Part shown: piece after piece, positions 31,402 to 63,392 of the stretch
Numbering within the stretch: position 1 is the stretch's first letter
How the letters are laid out: the number at the start of each line of letters is the position of its first letter
Sequence record: OR455461.1
DNA: 64,000 nt
Strand: one strand, 5' to 3'
Translations under genes and position numbers: made by a program
The notes under the pieces: model-generated
What the model was told of the DNA's origin: nothing
What the model saw: only the letters and a program-made list of their open reading frames with translations
Database searches by the model: none

Positions 31402-32956
31402 TTAATAAATATAATCTTCGATGTCTATTTCATTTTGTTTAATTGTCATATCATGGAAAGACTTCATAGAGCTTGTTACAATTGCTTGAGCTACCTGATT
31501 GACTAATAAACCAATATTTTCTATACCTAATTTGTAAGGGAGTTCTCCTGCACATTTACTACAGATATCTTCACTTGCACAATACATAGGACTTCTGAAG
31601 TTCAATACTTTCCCAATATGCTCATCTACATTTGAAGTAGTTAACAGTGTTAATTGACCTTTTCTTCCTGAATTATCTTCAAAATATCTATAAAGTAAAA
31701 GATTCGCATTATCTTTAGTTAAAGTTAATTTTAATGTATGTTTTGTTCTACAATCAGAACCTTGTTTATCTAATACAGTTGTTTGGAAAGCAGACATAAG
31801 TTTTTTAGCTTGATCATTTTATTATCTATATTTTATTATAGATTAGACTATATCTTATGAATTTAATCATTTCTATATTTAGTCGTTGAACAACTTAATA
31901 AAGTTGATGCTAGTTAGTTTTTAACATTCTAGCAATTAATAGAATTTATTGTGAGCATCTAATTTACCCACCTTCTTGAGTCATTTATGTTAATCTATAT
32001 TAATTTAATATAGATCAGACTATATCAAAAACTCTTTATGAGTTTAATTATATTTAGTCGTTGAACAATCATTCTGATTGATGCTGATTAAGTTTATCTC
32101 TTCTCAGCAATTAATAATTTTTCTATTATTACATTACTATAATAAAGGGCATTCATATACCTAAAGCACGTCCAGCTGAACCAGCAGTCATAATGTCTCC
32201 AAACATATATAGTTCTTCTGGATCAATTCCATCAGCTAAAGAACTCTTAGCAATACGTATTTTACTAGGATCAGCGAAGTTTTTATTTGCTCCACGTATT
32301 AATGCAGTTAACTTGAAGTTATTTCCAAAACTACCTCTTGATCCACTATCATAAATATCAAGGTCTGCTAAACCTTCTAATTCTTCTTTACTTAACTTAA
32401 TTAATTCTTTTTCAATAGCACTAATAGCATTCAATTCTTCACCAGGAGTATTTAATGCTTTACCATATTTCTCTAGTAATTCTTCTTTCTTTTGTTTAAC
32501 TTTATCAGGAGCAACCATCATTGTAGTTGTCAAACTAGAATTAATAAATCCTGCTATAGAGAAACCAAGCCATTGAAGTTTATCAATATACATATTCATA
32601 TCTTTAGTTGTAATAACATCATTAAGTAATAAACTAGATAACTCAGATTGTAGATTTCCTACACCTGATCCTCCCATATCTTTATTCATATATCCTATAA
32701 TAGGTCCTATTTTATTGTCTAATATAAATTTATTAAATATATATCTTCCAACTGTTGTTCTTTCATCTTTACTATTATAAACTAAATCTTTTTTAAGTTT
32801 AAATCTATCGCTAGGATTAAACATTGGTTGTGTATTTTGTCTAAATGCAAATAATTCTTTAAGTTTATCAAGAGTAATATCTTCTTTTTTTATACTTAAT
32901 AAAGTTGATACTTCTTTCTCAGATAAATCTTTTTTATCATAAGTCATATTAACCAA
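31402..32956 (-). CDS. rpoC: Multisubunit RNAP beta' fragment (bridge-helix region), probably virion RNAP; spliced, 3 exons, about 408 aa
   Basis: Exons 32956-32159, 31981-31966 (16 nt), 31814-31402. Joining gives RALG-TQEGG-YQAKKLMSAFQ, equivalent to the beta' ALKTANSGYLTRRL motif; SGSRGS and CxxC also present; late promoter at 33001-32990. Confidence 0.85.
31815..31965 (-). mobile_element. Group I intron, ORF-less, 151 nt
   Basis: P1 exon GUGGGU / IGS GCUCAC with U.G; P4 UGCUAG/CUAGCA; R UUCAACGACUA; S GAUAUAGUC; ends AAAAUG. Confidence 0.9.
31982..32158 (-). mobile_element. Group I intron, ORF-less, 177 nt
   Basis: 5' exon ends GGU, IGS GCC; P2 with GUAA tetraloop; P4 UGCUGA/UCAGCA; R and S motifs; ends AUAAAUG. 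Confidence 0.9.
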
Positions 32957-32989
32957 TTTAATTTCACTTCTTTCATATATTATTTGTAA

Positions 32990-33001
32990 TATTTGAATGT
33001 T
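32990..33001 (-). promoter_or_regulatory. AR9-type late promoter AACA-N6-TA
   Basis: Same motif sits just upstream of many genes: plus strand 9288, 16701, 25911, 33226, 38143, 39504, 42806, 45911, 46976; minus strand 844, 14330, 15971, 33001. Confidence 0.75.
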
Positions 33002-33272
33002 ATCGTCAATTTTATATTTTTGTAATTTATAAAAATATCTCGTAAAAAATTTGAAAACGCCCGGAATATTATATTTATATAATAATATAATTATTATAAT
33101 ATATTAAAATATTTAAATATTTTAATATATAAAAAATATAATATTAGAGGGGGTATATTTAGATTTTGATTATATCAAAATCTAATAAATTATTTCTTCT
33201 TAAATTACATAAGAAAGATAAAGAAAACAAGTACATATATAAATTTATTAAATGAAAGGAATTGAATAATAA

Positions 33273-36200
33273 GTGAAGTATCTTAATAGATTAAAGAATT
33301 TAAAATTCTATTCAATTTCAGGATATAAGATTAAAGCTATAGATGAAAATATTAAGGATCAAAAGAAAAACCAATTAATAATTTATAAAGGTTTTAAAGA
33401 AAATTCATTTATAGAATTCTTAAATAGTGGTATATTATATTATCAAAATTTCAAGAATATTTATACTCCTAGAATATATAGAACAGCAAATAGAAAATCA
33501 AGATTAATTACTAATATTTCAGATTATCAACAAGAAATTAAAAGTAAATCAATTAAATCTTATAGAGTTGAAAGAAATGAGAAATTATTTAAAGGAAGAA
33601 ACTATATAGTTGATTCAAGTAAATTTATCAATCTTGAAGATAAATCTTTAATGACTAAGAATTTTAAAACTGTATCAGATTCAATTAAAAATACTTATAA
33701 TAATTTAAATAATCCAGAAGAATATGAAAATTTATTATATGTAATTAATGTAGATGGATACAATAAATCTTCTCAAGAAGCTATTAGACCAAATACAAAA
33801 GATTTTATGTCAAGTTTATTTATGATGATTAAGAATCAGGAAGAATTACCTCATAAAGAAAATCAAAATGTAGTAGCTTTATTTATTTCTATTGAGAACG
33901 GTATAATGTTTAAATTTGATTTTAAAGATTATAATAAATTCAATAATAGATTAAGACAAAGATTAAGAAGAGCTATTGATTTAAATACACAACAAATAGA
34001 TACAGATGAAATTTCTAATGTTGAAGATGATGATAATACAGAAGCTATAGATTCAACTATTAAAAAGAAATCATTTAGCAATGTTAAAGATATTGATCCA
34101 GTTGAATTACAAGATAAGAATGAAGATGAAGTTAATCAGGATATTGAAGATTCTAAGATGGAAAAAATATCTAAGAAAATAGATGATACATTAAGATATA
34201 TTAAATCTAATGATAATATTGATATGGATATTAATGATGAATATAATATTGCAATGATAATTGAAAAAGAATTAAACAATAATAATGATCTTATTGATAT
34301 TGATGAAGATACATTATACAATGATGTACTTGATAAGAATGATTCATTTAAATCAATTAAAAGAGATATTAAAAATAAATCATATATTGGAGACACTGCA
34401 TTAAAGAATTCTAAAAAGATATTATCACTAGCTAAAAATCAAGATGAATATCTTGAAAAATTAGAAGATTTTAGTTTCTCTGAAGATAGTATTATTGATA
34501 GAGAAATTAATGAAAATGTCAATAGTATTAATGATGAAGCAATAAACAATGTATCTTCAAATGATTTTGACTTATCTTATATGAAAAAGACATTTAATAA
34601 AGACTTTGTAAATATTATGAAGAGTTTTAATGATAAGGAAGAAATACCAGTATTCATTAACAAAATGAATGTAGAAGATAATTCAGATTCTCAATCATTA
34701 AAGAATACTGTAAAAGTTCAATTTAAGAGTCCTGATGGAATTAACCATAATGTAAAATTTGATGTACCTAAAATTATTGATGGTAAATATTTAAAATTAA
34801 ATGGTGGTAAAAAGGTTCTAACTAAACAATTAATGATGTATCCTATTGTTAAATATAGACCAGATACAGTTTGGATTACAACTAATTATAATAAATTTAT
34901 CATTGAAAAATTTGGTACTAAAGAGAATTCTGAAACTGAATGGCTTAAAAAAGTTATTGAAGATAAACAAGTACTAGAATACATTAAAGATAAAAATGAT
35001 ATTAATATTCAAAAAGGTAACTCATCTTTAATTAATAAAGAATATTTAACTTCTGTGTTGTATAATAATTTATCTAAAAATATATTAAGATTCTCTAAAG
35101 ATGATTTGATAATTGATTTTAATCAAAGAAATCTTAAAAAAGTTATTTCAGAAAGTAAAACTTTAAGTGAAATTGATTATGATAAAGATAAATACTATCC
35201 TATCGGTTATAGTTCAAACAAATCTAAATTAATATTGTCAAATACTACAGAATCTATTATTTTTAAAGCTACTAAAAGTAATATAGAATCTATGAATATT
35301 AATATTACAGATTATATTATTGAACAACTTGAAGATAATATTGATTTTAGTCTAATAGATAAAAAATTCAGTAAAAATATTCAAGCTAGTAAAACAATGG
35401 CATTTTCTCGTGTTAAAATTACTAATAAATTAATTCCTACAATAGTATTATTAGGTTTCTATAAAGGTTTAACTAGTATTCTTGATCTTTATGAAGTTGA
35501 TTATAAGTTTGTTGAAGAAAATGAAAGAATAACTATTAAAGATAAGAAGAATAAAATTAAATTCCAAAATGGTTATCTTATTTATTCAACAGATAAATTA
35601 AGATATGATTTATTATTATCAGGATTAAATACTATTCCTACTTCACAATATGACTTTGAAGAATTTAATAGTGAAACACCTTACTTAGAATACTTTAATG
35701 ATAAGTTCTATAGTCGTAATGTTGGTAAAGGAATTAAAAATGCATTAGATTTAGCAATGGATCCTATTACAGAAGATGTATTAAGAGATTTAAAATTACC
35801 TGAAACTATGGTTGAGTTATTACTCTTAGCTAATACCATGCTAGAAGATGTAACTGCTAGAGAACACAATGACATGGGAATATATCGTGTACGTGGTCCA
35901 GAACAAGTTAATGCTTTAATGTATAAAATGATTGCAAATGCATATAAAGAATATTCTGACTCTTACAATAATAAGAATCCTAAGAATATTTCAGTTAAAC
36001 AAGACCAATTAATTAAAACTATTATGGAACAACCTACTGTAGATGAAGTATCTGATCTTAATCCATCTTTAGAGATTGATAAGATGACTTCAGTAACTTT
36101 TAAAGGTCCAGCAGGACGTAATAATGAACAATCATATGAACCTGATATTCGTTCATATAGTGAAAGTATGCAAGGCGTATTAGGAATATCTAGTCCTGAT

Positions 36201-38095
36201 AGTAATAAAATTGGGGTAGTTAGACAGCTTTCATATAATTCATTAATTAAATCTACTAGAGGTTATACTGATGGCGGTAAAAAAGATGCTAATGATACAT
36301 CTCTATACACTCCATTAGAATTACTTAACCCTTATTCTAGTAGACATGCCGATAATCAAACATGGATAGTCGGCTTAAAAACTATTTAATTGCTGAAATT
36401 ACTTTAAAGTTAATCAGCATCAATCAAATTGTTCAACGACTAAATAATAGATACTAATTATATAATTAGTAATGATATAGTCTCAACTATGTATAAAGTA
36501 TATAGAAATAAGATAATGTCTCCACGTATTGGAATGACTGGTATATGAATGCCCTTTATTATAGTAATATAATAATAGAAAAATCTTTAATTGCTGAGAA
36601 AATAATAATTAAGTTAATCAGCATCAATCAAATTGTTCAACGACTAAATAAGATTATACCTAAACGGTATTTGATATAGTCTCAGCTTTAATTTATTTTA
36701 AAGAAGTTCATTAAGAACTAATACACAATAAACAAAGTGTATTAAGATAATCTGACTCAAGCCAAGCACGTAATTCCAACAAAAACTAATAGTAAACCAT
36801 TAGTTGGATCTGGTGTTGATAAATCTTTAGCTTATCAATTATCAGATACATTTGCTTTTAAAGCTAAACAAGATGGTAAAGTATTAAAAATTAACGAGAA
36901 AACTGGTTTAATGACAGTAGAATATATCAATGGTGAAAAAGATATTGTTGATATATCTGAAAAATTAGCCAAAAACTCTAACTCAGGTTTTTATCAATCT
37001 AATAAACTTGATCCACAATTTAATGTAGATGACACTTTTAATAAAGGTCAAATACTTGCTAAAAATAATAATTTCTTTGCTGGATCCGGTAAAGATAATG
37101 ATATTCAATTTACTTCAGGTAAATTATCTAAAGTATCTGTAGCTAGCTCATATGGTATTATAAATGCCTTTCATTATAGTAATGTAATGTCAAAAAATTA
37201 TTAATTGCTGAGAAATATTAAATTAATCAGCATCTCTACATTTATAGAGTTCAACGACTAAATATGATTATTCATTAATACTAATGAATTTGATATAGTC
37301 TAATCTATTATAAAAATATAATAGCTAATATAAATGACTTATGAAGATAGTTCTATTATTTCTAGTAGTATGTCTGAAGCAATGTCTACTAAAGTTACTA
37401 TGAAGAAAACAGTAAATATTCCATCAAACACAAATATTCAATATATAGTTAAAGAAGGTCAGAAAGTACGTACAGGTGATCCTTTAATGATATTTGAAAC
37501 TTCATTTGATGAAGAAGGTATTGGTTCTTTATTAGATAAAATCGGTAGTGAATTTGAACAAGATATTCAAGATATAGCTAATCGAGCTGTTAGAAGTAAA
37601 TATACAGGTAATATTAAAAAGATTAATATTTATTATAATGATGATATTGAAAATATGACTGATAGTTTAGCTAAATTAGTTAATAATTACATTAAAAAAT
37701 CAAATGATAAATATAAAGAATATAAATCTGGAGTTAAAAATAATAAAGAAACTTTACCTGGTATTGATGTAGATATTGCAGCTGTAGAGAAAATTAATAC
37801 AGAGAAAATTAAAGGAGAAAAAGTTGACGGAGTTCTTATTGAAATCTTCACTGAATATGAAGATGATATGAGTGTTGGAGATAAAATTAGTTTCTACGGA
37901 GCTTGTAAAACTGTAGTTGCTGATGTAACTCCTCCAAATGAATCACCTTATTCTGAATATAGATCTGATGAAGAAGTTGAAGCTGTATTCTCTCCATTAA
38001 GTATTGTCTCTCGTATGACAGTTGATATTTATATGATGTTATTCACAAATAAAGCTTTAATAGAATTAAAACGTAAAGTAAAAGATATGGTATAA
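33273..38095 (+). CDS. rpoB: Multisubunit RNAP beta subunit, probably virion RNAP; spliced, 4 exons, 1421 aa
   Basis: Exons 33273-36353, 36519-36542 (24 nt), 36755-37156, 37337-38095. Joining restores RHAD-SPRIGMTG-TQAKHVIP (cf. DANRALMGSNMQRQAVP) and SYG-TYEDS (cf. GYNFEDS); VGDK and FSPLSIVSRMT motifs follow. Confidence 0.9.
36354..36518 (+). mobile_element. Group I intron, ORF-less, 165 nt
   Basis: P1 exon GCCGAU / IGS GUCGGC with U.G; AAUUGCUGA, AAUCAGCA, GUUCAACGACUA, GAUAUAGUC; terminal G at 36518. Confidence 0.92.
36543..36754 (+). mobile_element. Group I intron, ORF-less, 212 nt
   Basis: 5' exon ends GGU, IGS GCC; P2 GUAA tetraloop; same core; three P9 hairpins; terminal G at 36754. 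Confidence 0.9.
37157..37336 (+). mobile_element. Group I intron, ORF-less, 180 nt
   Basis: 5' exon ends GGU, IGS GCC; P2 GUAA tetraloop; same core; ends AUAAAUG. The ATG starting the ORF-track 37334 call is the intron 3' end. Confidence 0.9.
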
Positions 38096-38185
38096 AATTT
38101 ATAAGATGATTAATATCTATTTAATCATCTTTTTTTTATTTTAACACTATAATATTAATAAACATATAGAAAAGAGGAAAATATA

Positions 38186-39448
38186 ATGAATTTGGAATCA
38201 TTGGAAGAATCATTAGATAAAGAATTTAATTTAACTAATGAAGAATTAGAACGTAAGGTAGATACTGATAAAGAAGAGCCTATTTGTGAGGATTGTGGTT
38301 CTAAAAATTTATCTCTTAACGAATCAAATCAATTAGTATGTGAAGATTGTGGTTCTGAGAACAGTAAAGTAGTCAAAGAAGAATTATTAACTGAAGGAAT
38401 TAGTGAATTCTTTGCTAAACATGATGTTAAGAAAATAACTAAAAAAGCAATTAAAAGAGGTGCTACTAAAGTTGTAGTTAAAGAAATTGCAGATTTAGAT
38501 ATGATTGAAAAACTTAAGAAAGATAGAAGAATCAAAAAGTTACTACCATTAATAGGTGTAGTTGGTATGGCAATAAATAAGAAAAGTCCAGCTCAGATCG
38601 TAGCAAATATCGCAATTATTGGGTTGGGTGCAGCACATAGTGAAATATCTTCTAAAACTGAAGCAGGTAAAGATAAAGGATTAACAATTACTTTCACTAA
38701 TGAGGAAAAAGAACTTGTTCAGTCAATTGTTTTTACAACCACTGGATTAGACTTTAATAAAGCTGATGTAAAGAAAACTATTAAATCTTATATTGATAAG
38801 AAAGATAAAGAATTAATTGTAGAAAATATGAATAAATTAAATGAGCTAGATGGTTTGATGGAAGATATTTATATTCAAGAAGGTAAAAAATTAGATAAAG
38901 CTAAAAAAGTGGCTAGAAAAATTTTTGTGGGATTAACTCCTGAAGAAATTAAAGAAAAATTTGCTATACGTGTAGCTAAAAAGAAATATAATATTGAAGT
39001 TAAAAAAGGCTATAAGATAAATTATTCTGACGCTAAATTGTTTACACATGCAACTACACGTAAGGATTCACATACTATAGATTACGAATTAAGTTTAGTA
39101 TTTTCTTTTACTAAACCTAATGGTAAGAAAAGTTTCTTGGATAGAAGCGTTTTCATTTATAATCGTTTCTCAACAATGCAAGAAGCTGTATCATTCCAAA
39201 ATAAACATGGAAAAGATTTATTAAAAATATTTAAAACAACTAAAGCAGATAAAAAACCTAAGAAATCTAAATCAGTTAATGAAGGCATGGAAGAATTAGG
39301 TATTAATGAAGATTTTGAAGACAAATTATTTGAATATTTAGAAGGCGTTACAGAGCAAATCTTATCTGAAGAAAATAAAGAAGAACAACAAACTAATGAA
39401 GATATTACATCTTTAGAAGAATCTTTAGATAAAGAATTCAGTTTATAA
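38186..39448 (+). CDS. Putative head-associated protein with zinc ribbon
   Basis: CEDCGS x2; begins and ends with SLEESLDKEF; late promoter at 38143. Confidence 0.55.
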   Translation: MNLESLEESLDKEFNLTNEELERKVDTDKEEPICEDCGSKNLSLNESNQLVCEDCGSENSKVVKEELLTEGISEFFAKHDVKKITKKAIKRGATKVVVKEIADLDMIEKLKKDRRIKKLLPLIGVVGMAINKKSPAQIVANIAIIGLGAAHSEISSKTEAGKDKGLTITFTNEEKELVQSIVFTTTGLDFNKADVKKTIKSYIDKKDKELIVENMNKLNELDGLMEDIYIQEGKKLDKAKKVARKIFVGLTPEEIKEKFAIRVAKKKYNIEVKKGYKINYSDAKLFTHATTRKDSHTIDYELSLVFSFTKPNGKKSFLDRSVFIYNRFSTMQEAVSFQNKHGKDLLKIFKTTKADKKPKKSKSVNEGMEELGINEDFEDKLFEYLEGVTEQILSEENKEEQQTNEDITSLEESLDKEFSL

Positions 39449-39453
39449 TATTT

Positions 39454-39485
39454 ATCCCAATACCTAAATTAATAGGTATTGGGAT
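39454..39485 (+). terminator. Terminator hairpin (dispersed family)
   Basis: ATCCCAATACCTA-AATTAA-TAGGTATTGGGAT. Confidence 0.8.
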
Positions 39486-39553
39486 TTTATTAAATTTCAA
39501 GTTAACATTAACATATCGTATAAATAATAATAATAAGAAAGTGAGGAAAATTA

Positions 39554-40822: not shown

Positions 40823-40880
40823 TATATTATAAATCAAAAGAATTAACTATAAAATACAGAAAATAAAGGAGAATTTTAAT

Positions 40881-42797: not shown

Positions 42798-42966
42798 AAT
42801 TTTATAACATTATTATATAATATTAATTATTTTTCGCTGTTTTAAATAAAACCCTAATACATTACTAAACGATGAGCCAATTTAAAAATAAGAAACTCTC
42901 ATCAGTTTAAAAAATGTATTAGGGGGTTTTATTTGAAAAAATTAAACAGAAAGTAGGAGAAAACTT

Positions 42967-44121: not shown

Positions 44122-44126
44122 AAAGG

Positions 44127-51069: not shown

Positions 51070-51149
51070 TTACATAATCTCCTTACAGTATATAAAAAAT
51101 AAATATAATATTGGTATAATGTGAAATTAATCACATTATACCGTATTTA

Positions 51150-52355: not shown

Positions 52356-52420
52356 AATAAAATCTCTCCTAATAAAATAATTTTTGTATTACTACTTTTA
52401 TATAATATATATTTAAAATT

Positions 52421-53029: not shown

Positions 53030-53031
53030 TC

Positions 53032-53745
53032 TTATAACCTACCTTCATATTTAATGTAAAATTCAAAACCATATTCATTTTTAAAATACTGTAAGAAATC
53101 ATTTATCTTATTCATAATGAAATCTTTATTAGCAAATCTGAAGTCATATTTACTAATTGTATCTTTTTCTTTTTGAAGAGAGTTTAATTCTTTATTATTC
53201 TTATCCAATAACTCTTCATTACTAGATATTCTCTCTTTTAATTCATTTACTTCTTTTTTAAGTTTAAATGAATTATTCATACCTACTAGATTTAATAATG
53301 CATTAGATAAAGAACCTAGTTTAATTTTTTCATCTAGTTCATTATTTTTATCTTCTAATTCTCTATTATATTTTTTATTATTTCTATTCATAGTTGCAAT
53401 AGCATTTTTTCTGGTATCTATTTTATTTTCTAATATATTTATTTGATTATTAATTGATTCTTTTAAAAAATCAATATTCTCTTCTAAGCTATATAAGAAT
53501 ATAATACCTTCATAAATATCAAATTCAATAAATTTGTTCAAGATTAAAAGAGATATATTATTTTTATTCTCAACTATATCAAAATTAGATTTAATATTTT
53601 TAATAATAGATGATTTAAAACTAGTGTGGTTAATTTTAAATATCTCATCTGACAAAAAGTTATTAATATCTTTTCTTACATTTATAAATAATTCGTTGAG
53701 GTATTGATAATTATCAATTGCCTCTTTACGAGATATATGTGACAC
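53032..53745 (-). CDS. Coiled-coil hypothetical protein
   Basis: 237 aa with heptad-rich middle. Confidence 0.6.
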   Translation of the reverse strand: MSHISRKEAIDNYQYLNELFINVRKDINNFLSDEIFKINHTSFKSSIIKNIKSNFDIVENKNNISLLILNKFIEFDIYEGIIFLYSLEENIDFLKESINNQINILENKIDTRKNAIATMNRNNKKYNRELEDKNNELDEKIKLGSLSNALLNLVGMNNSFKLKKEVNELKERISSNEELLDKNNKELNSLQKEKDTISKYDFRFANKDFIMNKINDFLQYFKNEYGFEFYIKYEGRL

Positions 53746-53765
53746 AATACCTCAACTACCTTTCC

Positions 53766-55322
53766 TTATTTTAACTTAAAATCAGTAACGTTTAAAGCCT
53801 TTTTCTTAAATACATTTTTTAATCTATTATTAGCTTGTGTTACTAGTTTTTTAAATCCATGATCGACAAAATCAAAATACATCAATTTTTCATTTTCAAT
53901 ATAGCGTAATCTTCCCATTATCTGTATAACTTTACTTTCAGATGATAATGGAACTGTATTAATGACAGCTTTGAGACCAGGTATATCTATACCTGTTCCT
54001 AAAGATAAATCTGTAGTAATTATTAGATTAGATTCTAATACTTTAGATTTTTCTTCTTTATCAATTCCATCATAGTAGCGAATACAGTTTAGAAATTCTA
54101 ATCCTTCTTTACCTAATTTTTCTTCTAAATAGTAATAAAACTCATCTATCATATTTTTCAATTTAAACATAACGACAGTTTTTCTTATTTCTTTTTTCAT
54201 AATAACTTCATTAATGATATTAAATATCATATCAAAATATTCATCTTTTCTCTTATCTTTATCTATAAGATATTTACTGTAATGATTTATATTAAGACCA
54301 TTTCTTCTTGATGCTGAAACAAAATCAGCTAGTTCTGTTTCACTAGGTTCACTATTGTAGCGTATAATGAACACATCATGATATTTAGATGGTATCTTTC
54401 TATTAGAAGCTATTTGTCTATCATAATTATCTGATCTAAACATTGGTACGTTAAGGAATATATTACTGAATACCATATTCTCTGATTTATCAGATCTTTC
54501 AGGAGTTGCAGAAAGATATATAGATGGTAAATCTGTTTGTATATCTATATTTGTTAAACTTCTAAAGTCTAAATGTGCTTCATCAAATATTTTAATAGAT
54601 ACTTTAGTTTTAAATATTAGTTCTTGTAATTTTTCAATGTCGTCTTCTATAAATGAATTTAATGTCTTATACATAACTATATAGAAATCTATTTTACTAC
54701 GTTCATCAGACTTCATTTTAAATAATTTATTAATACTTGATTTACCTTGAATAATATATATTCTTTCGTCATCAATATTGGTATATTCTTTAATTTTATC
54801 AAACCATTGTTCTTTAAGTTTGTTATTATTAACAAATATCATAGGAACTAGCTGACGATCAATAACACTTTTTAAAGCACAAAAAGTTTTACCTTCACCA
54901 GTTTTAAGTGATAAAAATTTCTGGGTTGAAGCTTCATATATACTAAAAGCGTTTAAGAATTCAATAGATTTCTTTTGTAATAAATCTCTTGGTTTAAAAT
55001 TCATTTCCACATCATAATTCTTTTTAGGTTTAAAATATAAATTGTCTACTTTTCTAAAATCTTGAAAATCTACTTCTCCATGATTTTGTAATGACTGAAT
55101 TAATATCTTCATATTTATTCCAGCAGGAAATGATATAGTTTTCTCTTCCTCATTATATATGAAAGCTTTATAAGTATATTTAAAGTATATTTTATCCCAT
55201 ACAGATAGATACTTCTCTATTGCTGAGCAATATCCTAGTTCATAATTTTCAACAAGAATTCGTGTCGGATAAACCGACACTTTTATTTTTCTTGTCTTAT
55301 TTAAAACTACCATAAATTTCAA
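53766..55322 (-). CDS. Superfamily 2 helicase (UvsW-like)
   Basis: KTGEGKT, IFDEAH, LSATP, GTGIDIPGL, QIMGRLR motifs. Confidence 0.9.
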   Translation of the reverse strand: MKFMVVLNKTRKIKVSVYPTRILVENYELGYCSAIEKYLSVWDKIYFKYTYKAFIYNEEEKTISFPAGINMKILIQSLQNHGEVDFQDFRKVDNLYFKPKKNYDVEMNFKPRDLLQKKSIEFLNAFSIYEASTQKFLSLKTGEGKTFCALKSVIDRQLVPMIFVNNNKLKEQWFDKIKEYTNIDDERIYIIQGKSSINKLFKMKSDERSKIDFYIVMYKTLNSFIEDDIEKLQELIFKTKVSIKIFDEAHLDFRSLTNIDIQTDLPSIYLSATPERSDKSENMVFSNIFLNVPMFRSDNYDRQIASNRKIPSKYHDVFIIRYNSEPSETELADFVSASRRNGLNINHYSKYLIDKDKRKDEYFDMIFNIINEVIMKKEIRKTVVMFKLKNMIDEFYYYLEEKLGKEGLEFLNCIRYYDGIDKEEKSKVLESNLIITTDLSLGTGIDIPGLKAVINTVPLSSESKVIQIMGRLRYIENEKLMYFDFVDHGFKKLVTQANNRLKNVFKKKALNVTDFKLK

Positions 55323-55330
55323 CTACTTTC

Positions 55331-55789
55331 TTATTTATTAATTTCAATTGTAGAAGAAAATACATTATTAATTGTTTCAAAGATATCAGGTCCATCAGCT
55401 TTAAACATCCCTGAAAGATCAAATGTGGCATTTTCATCTTCTAAATTAACATATACAGGCATAGGACCAAATAAAATATCAGAAACCATATAGAATAAAC
55501 CTTCTTTGAATTGATTATTTTCTTCAGCTTTAATTAAAGTAATCTGTTGATCTTCTTCTTTATCTACAATAATATTTAATTTATAAATATCTTTAGAAGT
55601 AATACCATCTTTTGAATATTTTAAATAATCTTCAACATTTTCATTAATTAATTTAGTAATAGCAAAAGTACCTTTTTCTGAATTGAAAAAAGCATCTTTA
55701 ATCTCTTTTAAATATTTATCCTCTGTATTTAATTCAATTGTAACTTCTTTAGGGTATTCTAATTCTTTTAATTTAGTAACTTTCATCAT
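55331..55789 (-). CDS. Hypothetical protein
   Basis: 152-aa ORF in an operon. Confidence 0.65.
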   Translation of the reverse strand: MMKVTKLKELEYPKEVTIELNTEDKYLKEIKDAFFNSEKGTFAITKLINENVEDYLKYSKDGITSKDIYKLNIIVDKEEDQQITLIKAEENNQFKEGLFYMVSDILFGPMPVYVNLEDENATFDLSGMFKADGPDIFETINNVFSSTIEINK

Positions 55790-55858
55790 ATTGAAAATTC
55801 TCCATTCTATATAATTTTAAAATTTTATATCTATCAGTTATTATGAATTTTTAATTTT

Positions 55859-56134
55859 TTACGAATTAATTTCTTTAATTATCTTTTTATTTAAATCTTC
55901 AAAATCATAAATAGCTTCAATAGAAAAACTATGTGAAGACACAGGTATATCATCTTTAGTTAATAAGAATGAAAGTACATATTTATCATCAATATCAGCA
56001 TCAGAAATTAAATATATATTTCGCTCACCATCGTCATTAATATTATCAAATACCACATTACAATTTTTAAATATCGCCTTCAATAATTTATCTTTATCAT
56101 AATGAAATTTCTCTAATAAGTTATCATTAGTCAT
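55859..56134 (-). CDS. Hypothetical protein
   Basis: 91-aa ORF, SD AAGGAGG, early-type motif upstream. Confidence 0.65.
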   Translation of the reverse strand: MTNDNLLEKFHYDKDKLLKAIFKNCNVVFDNINDDGERNIYLISDADIDDKYVLSFLLTKDDIPVSSHSFSIEAIYDFEDLNKKIIKEINS

Positions 56135-56210
56135 ATTTAAATTCCTCCTTAGTAATTTTTATATAATATACCAAACTCTAAAGTTAATTAGAGTTTGGTT
56201 AAATCAATTG

Positions 56211-58127
56211 TTAAATATCAAAATCAAATAATGGATCGAACATAGATTCATTATCTTTACTGAAAAATCCATTAGTTTCATCTGTAGTAAGCTGAGCACG
56301 AACATTTTCAAATATCAGTGAATGTACTGGTGAAGGTGAATTTAATATAGAGTTACCTACATTACGTAAAGTAATTTTAGGATTAAATTCAGGATCTTTA
56401 TATTTCACTCTATCTTCATATATCGTATCATTCAAGAATACCATATTACGAATAATAGTCTCTACATGTACTGACATAACATCTGTACCTGACTTTAATA
56501 ATAGATCCATTACATCATTAAACATTCTTTGATAATCTTTTTCTTCATAATCATTCTTAATAAAATTACTTCTTTCTAATATAGAACGAATTTTTAGAAG
56601 TGGATCGGCTACACCTTCATTTTTAATTTTAATATTAAATAAGAAATTCTCTCCTAAATCTTTCATATTAAATACATAAGCATTTTCATCTTCATTGTAG
56701 AATTTTTCAATTGAATCAAATTTCTGATCTGGTATTCTAAGAATAACAGGTGATTTAACTTCATGTACCTTAGTACCTATTTTAAATTTAAATGATTTAG
56801 CTTTATATTTTCCATAATCAATATCTTCATTAATAATCATATCATCTATAATAACTTTAGTTTTCTCATCACGAGGAATAATATTATCTCCAGAGAATTC
56901 AAAGTGTTCATTAAATATATCTGGCCATGAAAATTCAGAAAGTTGAACAGCTTGAAGATGTTTTGTTGAAAGTAATTTCTGTGTCATAGGTTCTGTTAAC
57001 TGTAATGTAGCTATGATACCTACTGCTAAATTTCTATTAATATCATATAGTCTTCTTCCATAACACACTTGACATATTTTACCATTCGGTTCAGCACATG
57101 TTATAGGAGATCTTAATGGTACAATTTGACCTATTAAATGAACATCATTTCTACTATCAATTAATTTAAATTCTTGATCATTATCATCATAATAGTATCT
57201 ATCATTAATACGATCTAATTTTTCCTTACTATCTACATTGAAGTAAAGTAAATGCTTACTACCACAATCATGATTATCTGATAATTTTAAATCTGAAGTT
57301 AATAATGTAATCTTACGATTTAAATAACCTGATTCTCTAACTTTATTCTTAGAGTTCATTAAAGCATTTAAAGAAGATTCTGCATCAATAGCAAATTGAG
57401 TTGTATTCTTTAATCCACGCATAAATGAAGTATCAATAATATCAGTAACAACATCTCCACGAATATCAGGTTTAAATCCTACAAAACTTAATACCTCATT
57501 CAATTGTATTTTATTTATACCTGTTCCAGATTCTAAGAAAGTTTTATAATCATTTTCTTTATCCATCTTAATATGTTTAATAAGATTATCCATATTAGGT
57601 TTTTGAACTTCATTAATAATTTGTTGATACGTTAAATTAGGATCAATATCTTCATTATCAAAGTTAATTAATCTTTCAATTTCTTTATCTTCATTAGCTA
57701 ATCTCATAATATCATATAAAGATATAGAAGGTCCATCTACAGGAAGTATATATTCATTTGAGAATATAGTAAGTTCATCAATGATATAAGCTATTGATTG
57801 ACTGATTTTAATAGGGTCATGTCCTTCTTTAATAAAGTTCACTACAATTTTATCAAAATAATCATAGTAATCATTAATATTAGTTGGATTAACTAAATAC
57901 TCTTCTGTAAATTCCTTATTCATTTCTCTAAAAGGTTTTCCTAAAATTAATAATGTTAAATAATTACTTTTAGAAATATTATCTTCAAAGTAGTCACTCA
58001 TTCTGTCTTTAGGGTTATTAATAATATCCTGCTTTAATTCTTCTATTATTTTATAATAATTATCCGAATGTAAATAGTTATTATATTTACCCAATTTTAA
58101 ATCTAAAACTAACTTTTCTTCACTCAT
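56211..58127 (-). CDS. rpoC: Multisubunit RNAP beta' C-terminal subunit, probably non-virion RNAP
   Basis: Bridge helix KVRESGYLNRKI, RSPITC..ICQVCYG zinc site, trigger loop LTEPMTQKLLSTKH; intronless; early promoter upstream. Confidence 0.88.
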   Translation of the reverse strand: MSEEKLVLDLKLGKYNNYLHSDNYYKIIEELKQDIINNPKDRMSDYFEDNISKSNYLTLLILGKPFREMNKEFTEEYLVNPTNINDYYDYFDKIVVNFIKEGHDPIKISQSIAYIIDELTIFSNEYILPVDGPSISLYDIMRLANEDKEIERLINFDNEDIDPNLTYQQIINEVQKPNMDNLIKHIKMDKENDYKTFLESGTGINKIQLNEVLSFVGFKPDIRGDVVTDIIDTSFMRGLKNTTQFAIDAESSLNALMNSKNKVRESGYLNRKITLLTSDLKLSDNHDCGSKHLLYFNVDSKEKLDRINDRYYYDDNDQEFKLIDSRNDVHLIGQIVPLRSPITCAEPNGKICQVCYGRRLYDINRNLAVGIIATLQLTEPMTQKLLSTKHLQAVQLSEFSWPDIFNEHFEFSGDNIIPRDEKTKVIIDDMIINEDIDYGKYKAKSFKFKIGTKVHEVKSPVILRIPDQKFDSIEKFYNEDENAYVFNMKDLGENFLFNIKIKNEGVADPLLKIRSILERSNFIKNDYEEKDYQRMFNDVMDLLLKSGTDVMSVHVETIIRNMVFLNDTIYEDRVKYKDPEFNPKITLRNVGNSILNSPSPVHSLIFENVRAQLTTDETNGFFSKDNESMFDPLFDFDI

Positions 58128-58174
58128 ATCCTAATCTCTCCTTAATTATAAATAAATCAAATATTGTTACATAT

Positions 58175-58185
58175 TTATAATATAT
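58175..58185 (-). promoter_or_regulatory. Early-type promoter motif ATATATTATAA
   Basis: The same or a near-identical motif precedes 6254 (+), 9207, 25779, 28965, 30034, 31366, 52355, 56134 and 58127 (-); resembles the phiKZ early consensus TATATTAC. Confidence 0.65.
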
Positions 58186-58224
58186 AATTGAATAATGGTT
58201 TGTAATAAACCATTATTCAATTAT
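58184..58224 (-). terminator. Long perfect hairpin after the portal gene
   Basis: ATAATTGAATAATGGTTT/AAACCATTATTCAATTAT, 18-bp stem. Confidence 0.7.
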
Positions 58225-58233
58225 TTTTATATC

Positions 58234-60708
58234 TTAAAAACTACTATCATCATCTGCATTATCATCGGAACCAAATGAATTATCATCATCAGAACCAAAT
58301 GAATCATCTTCGGATTTTTTTGATAGATCCTCTTCTCTGTTATCTTTTTCTATATCTTTTTTAACATTCTCAATAATATTTTCAAATCTATCATAAGATA
58401 AATTAGACATAAACTCTTGAGTTACTAATTCTTTTCTAAATAATCTCTTAAGTTTATCATTTTCAGTCTCGTCTTCAGTTTCTGGAGTATATAAAGGAAC
58501 TAAGAAATCTAACATTTGTGTTACTGCACCAACTTCTTCATTTAAATTACCTAAATTTAAAAATACTGGTGGTGGGAAATATGCTTCTATTTCCGATATA
58601 GTTCCTAATAGTTCTTCATAATCTTTTTCATCACTAGTTTCCTTATTCTCTAAATAATATAAACGTCTTAATACTTTAGTAAAGAAATCTCCAAATGAAT
58701 TTTGATAGTTAACTACTTTTCTTACAAAACCATTATTTTGCATTGCTAATGATCTTGCATAATCAGTTTCAGCTTCTGAATCAATATAATTCAAAGGTAC
58801 TCCTGTACCTGAAATAACAGATTTCTTAAGCCATTCTAAGAACTCATCATTAATATCAATTTGAATACCTGAAATGGTATCTATTTCTAAAGGTGTATTA
58901 CCGTCTTTATTCTCAGGAATGTACATGTTCTCTAAATTACCTACTTGATTAAACATTGTTTGAACTGATGTTCCATCTCCAAACATACCAGAAGACATTT
59001 CACTAGATCTTACATTACGAATAACTTCCTCTACAGTTCCTTCATAATCATCATCTAATCCAGATTTAACTCTAAATACACGTCTATCTCTTGACTGATT
59101 TATTTTAACCATCATGGTAGTAATTAATGTACTTAAATATAATTTAGCAAAGAATAATGATTTATATAATCTTGAAACTCCATATGTCTTTTGACTATCA
59201 AGTTTATGATGTACAACTTCTTCAGGTTCTAAGTAAGTTAATTTAACACCATTTTCAATAATATAATTTTTACGTATTAAACGATATATAACATCTTTAA
59301 ATGAATCGTTCTTATTAACAAAATCCATATCAATTTTCTGAGCTATACCTTTAACCATTACATCTACAAGACCTTGATAAGCCATCAATGTATTACCATT
59401 TTCAAAGTAAGAACCTGATGTAGCATTCATTCCAGCATTTGGATTTTTAGAATTCGTGGTTGTTCCTCCCATAGCTGAATTACCTGTAACAGGATCTAAA
59501 TTAGTTATTCCCATTCCATTTGACATAGAACCCATTTGGGATTGTTTTTGATATCCATCTCCCATAATACCGTTCATAGCACTTAATAAAGGATTTGCTC
59601 CTCCTCTAATATCAGTACCAGAATCAGGTTCAATATAAAGATAACCAATACATAAACCATCTACTTCTAATTTAATCATATCTTCTGGATTAACATTTCG
59701 GAAATATGTAGTTCCACCTTTAATCTTTTTATCTTTGTTACTTCCTTGAGCTTTATCTAAGAAAGATTGAAGGTCATTTGAACCTTTATATTTACCAACA
59801 TCAGAAAGTAATTCAGAAGAATTTTTAAAGAATTCTACATTTTCATTAATACTCTTAAGAATCTCATTTTTAAAATTTTCTTTTTGTAATTTAACATTCT
59901 TTTCATCTTTATATATTGATCCTTCATCAATATGATTATTTAATTCCTTAAGTAAGATATCTAAATCTTCATTATTAATTTCTTCATCTAAAAATGATTC
60001 ATTAATAACTTTAGCATCATCAACAGAAGAACTTTCTCTACCTAAAACATCATCGTTCTCAGTAAGTATTTCTTCAAAATCTTTTCTAGTATCTTTAATA
60101 ATATAGAAAAGGTCACCTAACATTAATCCTTCTCTTACTGAAGGATATATTAATTTATTTAAATCATATTTTTCCACAATACGATCTAATTCTCTTTTAA
60201 CTTTTCTATTCTCTTCATTATTTTCATTAATGTCAGATTTATATCTATACATTAATGATAATTTACTAGTATCATCAGGAGCTATAATTGAAGTTGAGAA
60301 TACATCTATACTAGAAGAAATTTCTGGTATAAATTTATCTATAATACGATAATCGTCATATCTAGATATTCTAGCTACTTCAGTACTAAAATCTTGATCA
60401 TCAATATTCTCTTTAATAAAATCATTAACAAAGTTTTGTCTATCATCTTTAGATACAGTTTTATTCTTTCTACTGTTACTCATTTCTTTAGCAGTAACCT
60501 TAGCACCTAAAGATAATAAATCTCCACCATTGTCATCTCTATGACTAGTTTTTCTTCTTATATTAGGTAATCTTTTATTAAAATCGTTAATACTATTTCC
60601 TAGTATTTTAGGATTTTCTTCAGGATCTAAACTTTTAATAATGTCTTTATTTAAATTATTAAAAGAATTATTTATTTTATTATTTTCATCAGCCAAATTC
60701 CATTTCAT
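58234..60708 (-). CDS. Portal protein (T4 gp20-like)
   Basis: IDVFSTSIIAPD, LMLGDLFY, YGVSRLYKS, ENMYIP....TPLEIDTISG, VISGTGVP motifs. Confidence 0.8.
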   Translation of the reverse strand: MKWNLADENNKINNSFNNLNKDIIKSLDPEENPKILGNSINDFNKRLPNIRRKTSHRDDNGGDLLSLGAKVTAKEMSNSRKNKTVSKDDRQNFVNDFIKENIDDQDFSTEVARISRYDDYRIIDKFIPEISSSIDVFSTSIIAPDDTSKLSLMYRYKSDINENNEENRKVKRELDRIVEKYDLNKLIYPSVREGLMLGDLFYIIKDTRKDFEEILTENDDVLGRESSSVDDAKVINESFLDEEINNEDLDILLKELNNHIDEGSIYKDEKNVKLQKENFKNEILKSINENVEFFKNSSELLSDVGKYKGSNDLQSFLDKAQGSNKDKKIKGGTTYFRNVNPEDMIKLEVDGLCIGYLYIEPDSGTDIRGGANPLLSAMNGIMGDGYQKQSQMGSMSNGMGITNLDPVTGNSAMGGTTTNSKNPNAGMNATSGSYFENGNTLMAYQGLVDVMVKGIAQKIDMDFVNKNDSFKDVIYRLIRKNYIIENGVKLTYLEPEEVVHHKLDSQKTYGVSRLYKSLFFAKLYLSTLITTMMVKINQSRDRRVFRVKSGLDDDYEGTVEEVIRNVRSSEMSSGMFGDGTSVQTMFNQVGNLENMYIPENKDGNTPLEIDTISGIQIDINDEFLEWLKKSVISGTGVPLNYIDSEAETDYARSLAMQNNGFVRKVVNYQNSFGDFFTKVLRRLYYLENKETSDEKDYEELLGTISEIEAYFPPPVFLNLGNLNEEVGAVTQMLDFLVPLYTPETEDETENDKLKRLFRKELVTQEFMSNLSYDRFENIIENVKKDIEKDNREEDLSKKSEDDSFGSDDDNSFGSDDNADDDSSF

Positions 60709-60733
60709 CTCCTTTTTAGAATTTTTCCTTATA

Positions 60734-61519
60734 TTATATATTATAAATCAAAAAATCTAAATTTGCTATAAATTTATCTTGAGAAATTGAAAATTTTAGT
60801 AAGATAAATTCACTATATACATCTGTTTCCGGAGCAAAGATATCTACATGAACTTCAGGACAAACAATATTTCCTTTTGTAGTTTTATATTTTAATCCTA
60901 ATAAATATTTCTTTGAAGTTCTGAAATCAATTAAATAATCATCTTCATCATAAATATAATACGGTTCTCTTACAAACATTTCATTTTCAGTAAATACACA
61001 TTTAAAGAATTCAGAAGGTTTACATTCTTTAATATATAATAAAGATTTTTCATCTAAATTAAAAGAATAGAAAGGATCTAATTCTTTAAGAAATTTAATA
61101 GCATCTTCTGTATAATTATATTCTTCATTGATATTCTCTTCATTATGATAATCTTTATCATCAATAATTGTTTCTAAATCCGATTCTCTAGTAAACTTAA
61201 TACCTTTATTATCTTCATCATTAAAGAATTCTACTTTAATAATTTTATCAGCTTTATTAGTTCTAACTTGTATAAAATCTTCTACATTAAAACTACAATA
61301 CTCAATTGGAAGAAGATAATCATAAATTGGATTATCTTCTTTAATTTGTACATTAACATTATTAGGTATAGTTTCTAAATTAGAACCATTAGTAAATACA
61401 TTATTTTTGAAATCTATCAATTTACTTCCATTTTCAATATTATTAAATAATTTAGAAATTTCTTCAAAGGTCATGACTAATTTATTTACTATTTTACTTT
61501 CTTCAATTAAAATACTCAA
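60734..61519 (-). CDS. Hypothetical protein
   Basis: 261 aa, TTG start with AAGGAG SD, coupled to the DNA polymerase gene. Confidence 0.65.
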   Translation of the reverse strand: MSILIEESKIVNKLVMTFEEISKLFNNIENGSKLIDFKNNVFTNGSNLETIPNNVNVQIKEDNPIYDYLLPIEYCSFNVEDFIQVRTNKADKIIKVEFFNDEDNKGIKFTRESDLETIIDDKDYHNEENINEEYNYTEDAIKFLKELDPFYSFNLDEKSLLYIKECKPSEFFKCVFTENEMFVREPYYIYDEDDYLIDFRTSKKYLLGLKYKTTKGNIVCPEVHVDIFAPETDVYSEFILLKFSISQDKFIANLDFLIYNI

Positions 61520-61522
61520 AGG

Positions 61523-63392
61523 TTAAGCTCCTTTACTTTTTATTTTATCAGATACTTTCTTAGCTGCAACATTCAATGGAGGTAAACCATGAAATTCTTG
61601 AGCAAAGGATACACTATCTTGACTGTTAAATTTACTAATAAATTCAGTATTAAAGTCATAATTTAATTTGTCTTCTTCATACTTAGGAACTGTCATTGTA
61701 GATTTATCTCGTATTTGAATTTTACCTATGTGTCCTTCAGGAGTTATATTAAATCCTCTAATAATTGAAGGATATAGTGAACTCAAGTCAAAGTCACATA
61801 CATTACTAAATATTCTATTAGATCTAATATCTTTACCTTTAACTAAAATATCTCCCATACGTTCTATTAAAGTCATATTAGCTACAAATCCACCACGTAT
61901 TTTATCTGCATTTGGATCAGATAGTATTTTAGAGTGATTATTACTTAATACAAATCCTTGATTTTCAAAGAAGACAGAACTACGATTTCTTAAACAAATA
62001 GTTTTCTTAAGTGCTTTACTTGGTCTAGTTCTAGTCATATCTACAATAGAGAATAGTAAATCAAACATATTAGTGTTCTTCTCTATTAAAGCAGTTAATA
62101 TGGTATCTTTAATATTATAAAGAATGAATGTGTAATAATCTCTAAAATGTAAATCAGAGATAGAGCCTTCATATACATCCTTTTTAATTCCAGTTTCTTT
62201 TTCACCAACATCATTTAACTTAACTGATTCCATTACACCGTTCGGTTTATTCACATTTGCATATAAAGCTAATTGGTCAATCCAGTTAGTGTATGAGTTA
62301 GTTTCGAATGTAGATGATCTATTAGCTGCATCTGTAGCATTCTTATCTAATCTATAATAAGCTTTTTTATCTTGTAAATCTTTAGAACAGAAATAATCTG
62401 CTGGATCTTCTCCATTAACTTTAATTCTTTCAAATATAGTTGCAAAGTCAAAATCTAGATTCCATGCGGTACATATATCAGGCTTACTAATTTCATTAAT
62501 ATAGTATAAGAATGATTTAATAATTTCCATTTCAGTATCTAATTCATATATTTCAAATTCTAAACCTAAATCTTCTCCAATCTCACTATCTTTATTATTA
62601 TAAATATTATTTAGATCTTCCATTAATTTAGTTTTATCTGTCATAACTTCATTATAATTATCCGTATCATATTTTAATGCAAATGTTAAACATTTACGTT
62701 TACTCCAATCAACTACAGTTATAATATTAATTTCAGCCATTCCTGGTTCAGGGACATTTATATTAACTTCATACAATTGTATAAAGATTAGACTATATCT
62801 TATCAATATCAGTGATAATTATATTTAGTCGTTGAACACAATTAAATGTGATGCTGATTGTCTTTAAACTTTTCAGCAATTAATAATTTTTTAATTGAGC
62901 TACCTAAAACCCAATTACATTTGATCCATCTACCTCTATATCAAATAGACATATATCAATTCCAACTTTACTATCTAAGTTTTGTTTGATATATTCATTG
63001 ATATTATAATCTTCAATATTAATATCAGATCCATGAACATTATTCATTAAATGAAAATCTTTTAATTTTCTAAACTCTTCATAATTACCTGAAGATAATA
63101 TTCTATCGTATTCTGATTTATCTTGAGCATTACCTGCTTCTCTAACTATAGATTTAATAACATCTTTATGTTTACAATGTACAGTTCTAACTTTCTCTTT
63201 TGCCATAGAACCTACAACTTGACCAGGTGGTAACCAATATTCATCTTTAGTAACATAATAGTGCATCATTGGATCCACTATTTCCATATGTTTTTTAGTT
63301 CCATCTTCTTCTTTAACAACCATTACTACTTTTTCTTTTTTATTAGATGTTTCTTTTTTATTCAAATATGTTGATTTTATAAAACGACCCAT
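61523..63392 (-). CDS. polB: Family B DNA polymerase, N-terminal part (3'-5' exonuclease plus motif A); spliced, 2 exons, 571 aa
   Basis: Exons 63392-62909 and 62754-61523 join as DIEVDGSNVIG-F-PEPGMAE (ExoI). AWNLDFD (ExoII), YNIKDT (ExoIII) and DFDLSSLYPSII (motif A) are present; motifs B/C are absent, so the polymerase is split. Confidence 0.88.
62755..62908 (-). mobile_element. Group I intron, ORF-less, 154 nt
   Basis: P1 exon AAUUGGGU / IGS GCUCAAUU (8 bp, U.G); same P4/R/S core; ends AUAAAUG. Confidence 0.92.

Follow-up and report, generated by a model that had tools for sequence, protein, structure and literature searches.

Classical phage group I introns are about 250-1100 nt long, mostly of type IA with P7.1/P7.2 helices, and often carry endonuclease open reading frames (ORFs); for small members of the class, the 205-nt Azoarcus tRNA-Ile intron is the customary size benchmark. 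Stripped cores of about 160-180 nt derived from the sunY intron, the miniribozymes of Doudna and Szostak (1989), are said to retain catalysis, and in phage AR9 a 2016 study reportedly found the RNA polymerase (RNAP), gyrase and other essential genes to be interrupted by self-splicing introns. The classical set includes the introns of T4 td, nrdB and sunY, of the SPO1 DNA polymerase gene and of Twort orf142 and nrdE (PMC3984707). In the gut 'Jug' jumbo phages, 2,513 group I introns have been counted in 136 phages (18.5 per genome, mean length about 206 nt), splitting terL, nrdD and DNA polymerase genes, with metatranscriptome reads supporting the splicing of 37 out of 76 (Sci Adv 2026, PMC12880540). 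Introns of the Staphylococcus phages Machias, MarsHill and Madawaska have been deduced from protein alignment to AR9, in a paper in which class, ribozyme structure and size are undiscussed. Here we analyze six short elements (A to F) that interrupt RNAP and DNA polymerase genes in a 64,000-nt stretch of DNA (hereafter the window), the right-hand 64 kb of the Staphylococcus phage AH12 genome (OR455461.1, 264,661 bp). On the sequence comparisons reported below, these elements are very probably true group I introns and belong to one paralogous family with 31 members in AH12.

The AH12 introns share with the classical phage introns their location in genes of DNA and RNA metabolism, their insertion at conserved motifs, a connection to homing-endonuclease mobility and the presence of several introns per gene (as in Twort), but the length, P7.1/P7.2 helices and endonuclease ORFs typical of that set are absent, and the AH12 introns are far more numerous per genome. 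With the Jug introns they have in common that many small, ORF-less group I introns occur per jumbo-phage genome and in essential genes; the hosts differ (Bacteroides/Phocaeicola as opposed to Staphylococcus), and the Jug report gives no structures or individual sizes (PMC12880540). Machias, MarsHill and Madawaska are interrupted in the same genes and partly at the same sites. AR9 belongs to a related lineage and, as noted above, is also reported to have interrupted essential genes. Like the Azoarcus intron, the AH12 introns are ORF-less, lack P5abc and P7.1/P7.2 and can carry a GNRA loop on P2, and A, D and E have a similarly short P1 with three exon base pairs. The Azoarcus intron, however, is rich in G+C, interrupts a tRNA anticodon loop and possesses P2, an extended P5/P6 and two tetraloop-receptor clamps, whereas the AH12 introns have 19-23% G+C, lie in protein-coding genes, measure 151-212 nt and in three cases lack P2. 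Judging from the Rfam consensus, we take their R and S elements to resemble the fungal-mitochondrial/Tetrahymena-type consensus rather than IC3. The sunY miniribozymes, for their part, were made by deletion in the laboratory and assayed in trans under raised Mg2+, whereas the AH12 introns are natural and cis-acting and lie in essential genes.

A 2-kb piece of the window matches OR455461.1 with 100% identity, and window positions equal record positions minus 200,661. AH12, S6, MarsHill, Madawaska, Machias, PB50, LY01, DC4, PALS_2 and SA1 all count among the AR9-like jumbo phages of S. aureus. Its record annotates zero introns and enters the host genes as separate 'hypothetical protein' or 'rpoB_2' fragments; these introns are the reason why polymerase, gyrase and reductase genes appear as 'hypothetical protein' fragments in AH12-like records. 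A whole-genome scan (pieces L006-L009, covering record positions 1-199100, plus the window), combined with a covariance model built from 30 AH12 cores (R1), yields 30 compact copies and one ORF-carrying copy, or about one intron per 8.5 kb. In the window, R1 scores 121.7 bits for A, 98.2 for B, 90 for C, 97.8 for D, 95.9 for E and 108.2 for F. The sequence-only reading that first drew attention to these elements had placed all of them in polymerases; this is correct for the six in the window, which lie in RNAP and DNA polymerase genes, but the family as a whole also interrupts nrdE, gyrB/parE and several unnamed genes, besides further RNAP genes. A 14-mer of the family, TTCAACGACTAAAT, occurs in six exact copies in the window, at 31877(-), 32052(-), 36432(+), 36636(+), 37250(+) and 62823(-); with up to two mismatches it has 8 matches against 1.2 expected, a count reached in 0 of 100 shuffles. 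One further match resembling the R and S blocks, at window 28447(+), was attributed to chance, as it lies within a minus-strand coding region and other core elements are absent.

Intron ends (Table 1) were set from the intron-less alleles of phage S6 together with P1 pairing; an automatic splice-site finder based on P1 pairing, a terminal G and an open frame was run on 30 AH12 copies and dropped as too ambiguous in A+T-rich DNA. In a comparison at the DNA level, all six introns are absent to the base from the S6 genes, and their excision restores the frame. The S6 beta' gene reads without interruption GCACTAGGT-ACTCAAGAAGGAGGGT-ATCAGGCT, and the AH12 insertions follow GGT (A) and GGGT (B); ACTCAAGAAGGAGGGT, the S6 counterpart of the 16-nt micro-exon, shows one difference from it and is contiguous with both flanks. 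The empty site of intron A is ...SAGRALG|TQEGG..., and the three beta' exons add up to 798+16+413 = 1227 nt, the length of the uninterrupted S6 gene. In RNAP beta, C follows GAT, D and E follow GGT, and the S6 empty sites are SRHAD|SPRIGMTG (C), GMTG|TQAKH (D) and SSYG|TYEDS (E); the exons total 4266 nt, in frame, compared to 4254 nt for the uninterrupted S6 gene. The S6 DNA polymerase reads FDIEVDGSQVTGF-PDP where AH12 is broken after GGGT, giving the empty site FDIEVDGSxVxGF|P (F), and the two exons (484+1232 = 1716 nt) are in frame. A T precedes and a G ends all six introns at positions fixed by S6. These alleles and P1 thus reproduce the sizes and outer coordinates of the sequence-only reading, which had reported introns of 151-212 nt, five of them below 200 nt, each following a U, ending in G and restoring protein motifs on removal, as the base-exact empty sites confirm in six out of six cases.

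Table 1. Introns, micro-exons and host genes of the window (positions are those of the window; (-) features are read on the complementary strand)
Feature	Position	Strand	Length (nt)	Details
Intron A	32158-31982	(-)	177	virion RNAP beta' mid-domain gene; P1, GUAA-loop P2, P3-P9
Intron B	31965-31815	(-)	151	beta' mid-domain gene; no P2; smallest in the window
Intron C	36354-36518	(+)	165	virion RNAP beta (C-terminal) gene; no P2
Intron D	36543-36754	(+)	212	RNAP beta; P1, P2, P3-P9 and two additional 3' hairpins
Intron E	37157-37336	(+)	180	RNAP beta; P1, P2 (GUAA loop), P3-P9
Intron F	62908-62755	(-)	154	DNA polymerase exonuclease-domain gene; no P2
Micro-exon ACTCAAGAAGGTGGGT	31966-31981	(-)	16	separates introns A and B
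Micro-exon SPRIGMTG	36519-36542	(+)	24	separates introns C and D; set by alignment to the uninterrupted S6 gene
beta' mid-domain gene		(-)		5' exon 32159-32956, 16-nt exon, 3' exon 31402-31814
Virion RNAP beta gene	33273-38095	(+)		exons 33273-36353, 36519-36542, 36755-37156, 37337-38095
DNA polymerase (exonuclease domain) gene	61523-63392	(-)		exons 62909-63392, 61523-62754

The family membership of the exon pieces was tested with Pfam and PHROGs. The profile phrog_2962 ('RNA polymerase beta subunit') matches the beta' 5' piece with positions 39-294 and the 3' piece with positions 303-432, so that the two are contiguous parts of one family; likewise, phrog_3011 ('DNA polymerase') covers 21-154 on exon 1 and 163-562 on exon 2 of the DNA polymerase gene. 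The RNAP beta pieces match phrog_14872 and Pfam PF00562. Among the exon pieces searched with Pfam only the last beta exon, downstream of intron E, was recognized (RNA_pol_Rpb2_6), the other pieces being identified by PHROGs. In Machias the beta' homolog is annotated as 'viral RNA polymerase beta-prime subunit, mid-domain' and the polymerase homolog as 'DNA polymerase exonuclease domain protein', with joined exons. The motif assignments themselves follow E. coli and family-B sequences. On this basis we take intron E to stand directly before YED in the GYxED motif that belongs to the second-largest RNAP subunit, introns C and D to flank SPRIGMTG as a PSRM-type motif, A and B to lie within the SAGRALG-TQEGG segment of beta', and F presumably to fall eight codons past the FDIE exonuclease motif.

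All six introns share the same order of elements. In P1, the splice-site U forms a U.G wobble with the 5' G of the guide; the helices are GGU(AU)/(AU)GCC in A and D, GGU(AUU)/(AAU)GCC in E, GUGGGU/GCUCAC in B, GCCGAU/GUCGGC in C and AUUGGGU/GCUCAAU in F. P3 follows, in which an AAUUAU-type strand pairs with the 6 nt after the R block, and then J3/4 (UAA), P4 (UGCUGA/UCAGCA), a P5 flanked by A-rich joints and the P6 hairpin. The R block holds the 5' strand of P7, A[C]GACUA, and is followed by P3' and the P8 hairpin; the S block comprises J8/7 and the 3' strand of P7, UAGUCU, and precedes the P9 hairpin and a short tail whose last base is G. With its bulged C, P7 has the form A[C]GACUA/UAGUCU in 35/35 sequences. 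The P3/P7 pseudoknot and the P3-P9 core are found in each of the six, and the P, Q, R and S elements, AAUUGCUG.., AAUCAGCAUC, UUCAACGACUAAAU and (A/U)GAUAUAGUC, align to the consensus columns of the Rfam group I intron model RF00028. The strings initially put forward as common to the six, AAUUGCU(GA/AG), (UC/CU)AGCAUC, UUCAACGACUAAAU and GAUAUAGUCU, are indeed present in all of them.

The remaining architectural claims of the sequence-only reading also agree with our measurements. P5, given there as about 3 bp, has 3-4 bp. P5abc is absent because the 14-21 nt between the P4 strands (20 in D) leave no room for it, and P7.1/P7.2 are absent because P3' directly follows R. The three introns described as lacking P2 are B, C and F, in which only an A-rich joint lies between P1 and P3; A, D and E carry a P2 hairpin with a GUAA loop. 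Wherever P2 occurs in the family, its loop is of the GNRA type (GUAA, GUGA, GAGA, GAAA or GCGA), the usual module for tertiary docking. Nor do any of the six introns contain a homing-endonuclease-sized ORF, the longest being 44 aa, and no maturase-like ORF is seen within or beside them. This 44-aa ORF (window 36545-36679(+)) begins at the third base of intron D and is probably a chance occurrence, as is a 20-aa ORF that begins in intron A and is too short for an endonuclease.

When each intron was folded together with 8 exon bases by unconstrained minimum-free-energy (MFE) prediction, P1, P7, P8 and P9 were recovered throughout. P2 is recovered in A and E, while D takes an alternative pairing and its GUAA-capped P2 was read by eye; P4/P5 are recovered with the exception of D, where only P4 is, and P6 is recovered in A, B, E and F. 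P3 is missing from these folds because it is pseudoknotted with P7. For B and for F, only 1 of 200 dinucleotide shuffles folds as well as the native intron (z = -3.3 each). Two other classes of intervening sequence were considered and discarded. A group II intron is ruled out by size (151-212 nt, against at least about 400 nt) and by a structure that is a group I core, and Rfam reported no group II match on these elements; an intein is ruled out by stop codons right after the junction (GGT|ATATGA) and by lengths of 151, 212 and 154 nt, which are not multiples of three.

Covariation was assessed on 36 distinct sequences, Machias and Madawaska orthologs included. Standard pairs occupy 94.2% of cells in this set, compared to 75% when 3' partners are shuffled and 31-50% when strands are slid by 1-3 columns. 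Both sides change in 24 of the 36 pairs, and the covariation score of 0.435 (0.130 in shuffles) was not attained in any of 500 shuffles. The covarying helices are P3, P5, P6, P8 and P9, together with two P4 pairs, P7 being invariant. The compensatory changes noted earlier from the six introns alone are real, both in P4 (UGCUGA/UCAGCA versus UGCUAG/CUAGCA) and in P3 (AAUCUU/AAGAUU, AAUUAU/AUAAUU, UUCUAU/AUAGAA), and the proposal that P6, P8 and P9 vary in sequence and yet stay paired extends to the larger set, in which all three covary.

The covariation alignment was made with the covariance model and is fitted to the structure, so P3 was also tested without an alignment, by anchoring on its invariant flanks. 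Across 21 distinct P3 versions, 5.76 of 6 pairs form with a strand's own partner against 3.53 of 6 with the partners of other copies, and 1.5% of mismatched combinations are fully paired. Orthologs provide a further comparison that is independent of the alignment, the exons of AH12 being about 80% identical to those of LY01 or Madawaska. P1 of C changes from GCCGAU/GUCGGC in AH12 to GCGGAU/GUUCGC in Madawaska and LY01, and P3 of B from UUCUAU/AUAGAA to UAAUAU/AUAUUA. Compensated changes are likewise seen in P3 and P4 of D, in P6 of A, C and E, and in P8; the LY01 ortholog of D, in which P3 and P4 are compensated, lacks the 3' extension.

On these introns Rfam gave no match at the gathering score, and a 5.8-kb stretch searched at E<=10 gave none either. 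When RF00028 (Intron_gpI) was run with laxer filters on stretches of 186-381 nt holding introns A, B, D and F, it spanned model positions 1-253 on all four with 25-27 bits and E-values of 4e-5 to 9e-5 (A 26.8, B 26.9, D 26.7 with E 3.7e-5, F 25), and its alignment, in register from P1 to P9, puts P1-P6, P8 and P9 at the places assigned by hand. Their A-U-rich helices, and the fact that they leave the model's variable regions nearly empty, keep the introns below the Rfam threshold. This silence fits a published remark on phage DC4, in which Rfam finds no introns.

The mechanism we envisage is the one established for group I introns. The 5' exon would pair through its last 3-7 bases with the internal guide to form a P1 ending in the U.G wobble; free guanosine would dock at the G-C pair of the invariant P7 with its bulged C and attack after that U; the terminal G of the intron would then occupy the same pocket, and the exons would be ligated. 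Ligation is predicted to restore the RNAP beta', RNAP beta and DNA polymerase frames, the 16- and 24-nt exons included. The RNA performing this would be a bare core, made up of P1, an optional GNRA-capped P2, P3, P4, a short P5, P6, P7, a short P8 and P9. Taken together, the U.G P1, the terminal G, the P/Q/R/S elements, the P3-P9 core, the covariation and the full-length RF00028 alignment sustain the original assignment to group I. Splicing in vivo is a strong inference, drawn because AH12 is a propagating isolate; it appears to be needed because the 16- and 24-nt micro-exons are not expressible alone and because one paralog splits ADFDG|D.

Several observations weigh against this interpretation. 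The AH12 introns are known here from DNA sequence, and their RF00028 scores reach about half of the 50-bit gathering cut-off, which is a detection threshold and not a biological criterion. G+C content is low and P3 consists almost wholly of A-U and G.U pairs, while P1 of A, D and E pairs with three exon bases only. Inspection of the folds by eye revealed no clamp of the GNRA-receptor type in the P2-less introns B, C and F, so that these A+U-rich, clamp-less molecules may be unstable as naked RNA at 37 C.

Such considerations lend weight to the view that these are group I introns, as we propose, but that under physiological conditions they are not autonomous and need an RNA chaperone or maturase from phage or host, in the way that CYT-18 and Cbp2 assist mitochondrial introns. 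We regard this as possible, if somewhat doubtful. The A+U content of 77-81% and the minimal helices speak for it, and A+U richness combined with the missing clamps of B, C and F argues for chaperone help, B, C and F having no GNRA-capped hairpin because they have no P2. Some family members lack P8 as well, MarsHill-like relatives reportedly form plaques at about 30 C but not at 37 C, and AH12 encodes a cold-shock-type protein. The Tetrahymena intron, moreover, needs high Mg2+ or protein once P5abc is removed. On the other hand, the core is complete, the surroundings of the G-binding site are invariant and no maturase-like ORF accompanies the six introns; engineered sunY miniribozymes (about 160-180 nt) reportedly show activity in vitro, and the Azoarcus intron is very stable at 205 nt, though G+C-rich. 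The intact and strongly conserved core argues, as far as sequence can, that the chemistry would be the RNA's own.

The two explanations that deny splicing altogether fare much worse. If the elements were decayed relics, the polymerases would be assembled from separately translated fragments, and it is true that jumbo-phage RNAP subunits are naturally split into several polypeptides (PMC7598289) and that OR455461.1 lists the pieces as separate coding sequences. We nevertheless consider this very improbable: the 16- and 24-nt exons lie inside conserved motifs and have neither a start codon nor a ribosome-binding site, the downstream pieces start in mid-codon (T|AT in beta', T|TC in DNA polymerase), the splice-site U.G and terminal G are retained in six out of six introns, and the covariation denotes continuing selection on the fold. 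Still harder to credit is a dispersed repeat of another kind (for example a regulatory RNA or an element of the MITE or REP type) that came to lie between gene fragments by chance. Many near-identical copies per genome would suit it, but every copy examined lies within conserved coding sequence and has base-exact empty sites in relatives, the elements have a group I core structure and a full-length RF00028 alignment, and the strict family pattern has no match in 185,579 bacterial and archaeal genomes.

The occupancy of intron sites varies among related phages. A BLAST search with one element finds 113 places across six Staphylococcus jumbo phages. Counted per genome, BLAST places number about 16-28 in PB50, AH12, Machias and LY01 and about 7-12 in MarsHill and Madawaska; S6, DC4, PALS_2 and SA1 have none. 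According to R1, Machias carries orthologs of A, B, D and E, but not of C; Madawaska has the C ortholog only, among the A-E sites, and MarsHill has no R1 match in the beta'/beta region, while LY01 has all of these introns plus extra ones. The building of a covariance model and a phage search with it had been proposed at the outset; R1 finds the AH12 copies, the Machias and Madawaska orthologs and cores in IMG/VR. The AR9 gyrA gene was also inspected. Its two introns (L132 35490-36300) are about 350-370 nt long and some 80% alike by eye, and are matched neither by R1 nor by Rfam at E<=0.1; from these two, we rejected the identification of the AH12 family with the AR9 gyrA introns, which belong to a different, larger intron family.

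Endonuclease genes are associated with some relatives of the six. The Machias ortholog of F has an insertion of about 605 nt directly after P3' that holds an annotated HNH homing endonuclease (L131 938-1544), and the ORF-carrying AH12 copy (L008 35878-37383(-)) holds a 447-aa ORF in P6, between P6 and the R block, that matches HNH/homing endonuclease PHROGs (phrog_559, E 1e-69) and a zinc ribbon. Since occupancy varies among relatives and HNH genes are present in the Machias F ortholog and in an AH12 paralog, the six introns are most likely endonuclease-free forms of mobile introns. Several copies share guide and target motifs: A, D and E have GGU, while F has UUGGGU in common with two paralogs (in gyrB and an unnamed gene). 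This sharing would fit spread by reverse splicing. In Machias a second endonuclease-containing intron is found further downstream in the same DNA polymerase gene, and a larger, endonuclease-containing group I-like intron lies in the beta gene (L002 ~6150-7700), about 290 nt upstream of site C. AH12 is empty at the latter site, and the P1-P2 module of that Machias intron resembles those of A, D and E.

Some members of the family dispense with P8. Four AH12 copies lack this helix (L009 16983-17108, L009 5109-5231, L007 20923-21053 and L006 11378-11507) and measure 144-153 nt, with boundaries by our own reading that put them at AH12 record positions 166082-166225, 154208-154354, 70601-70753 and 11381-11529; the LY01 ortholog of B (L133 1152-1284) is also without P8. 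In these five, 5-6 nt separate P3' from the 10-nt S block (J8/7 and the P7 3' strand). The P8-less gyrB intron restores KGLG|EVNADELFET on excision. We know of no group I intron described without P8. One AH12 member, at L006 11381-11529(-), splits the ADFDG|D catalytic loop of an RNAP beta'; restoration of the motif there requires that the last exon base be a C opposite a guide A, C.A replacing U.G, and a second intron lies 15 nt upstream.

Compact cores are frequent outside the Staphylococcus phages as well. Scanned with the strict family pattern, IMG/VR yielded one matching contig. When the search was for a compact R...S segment, at least 119 loci emerged, in 81 of which R1 recognizes 142 cores, mostly of 130-156 nt as measured from P3 to slightly beyond P9. 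Contigs of 200-400 kb hold many of these cores, often as tandem arrays with very short exons (L049 3396-3740(-); L063, L053, L040, L085) that hold up to about 8 cores per 3.4 kb; in one array, read by eye, an intron of about 170 nt without P2 stands beside a 12-nt exon. We do not equate these contigs with the Jug phages. A literature search found no paper stating the smallest natural group I intron. The suggestion that the AH12 introns are among the smallest natural group I introns is plausible, yet they are not unique, as equally compact cores are frequent in giant-phage contigs and small group I introns of jumbo phages have been published. A bolder proposition is that these introns and their P8-less AH12 and LY01 siblings of 144-153 nt would be the smallest natural self-splicing group I ribozymes, representing a 'mini group I' architecture not described before, which escapes Rfam and is widespread in giant phages, and that the family rose to about 30 copies per genome in part through reverse splicing into sites matching a short guide sequence; we put this forward tentatively, and think it rather unlikely to hold in full.

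The sequence-only reading had asked whether records of related phages already annotate the introns, and they do, the Machias, MarsHill and Madawaska genes being entered with joined exons. The presence of introns at these sites is already on record, as is that of small group I introns in jumbo phages generally, and the novelty is lower than had been supposed; the new contribution lies in recognizing the introns of AH12, and by extension those of related phages, in describing their structure and in their compactness. If they self-splice, natural group I introns of 150 nt would constitute a new lower bound for this ribozyme class, provide compact scaffolds for structural work and for RNA circularization by permuted introns, and, through the natural P2-less and P8-less variants, reveal which core helices are dispensable. 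Rfam-based pipelines miss what is a common class of phage introns, and the presence of about 30 copies in some phages against none among close relatives offers a natural system for the study of endonuclease-less intron spread and loss.

Two tRNA-like genes were also observed in the window, at 29517-29605(-) and 29964-30035(-), with Rfam tRNA scores of 60 and 45.8 bits. ARAGORN assigned no anticodon to either, and their Machias homologs are called pseudo tRNA-Asn. The gene at 29517-29605 has an anticodon loop of 18 nt, equivalent to a 14-nt insert.

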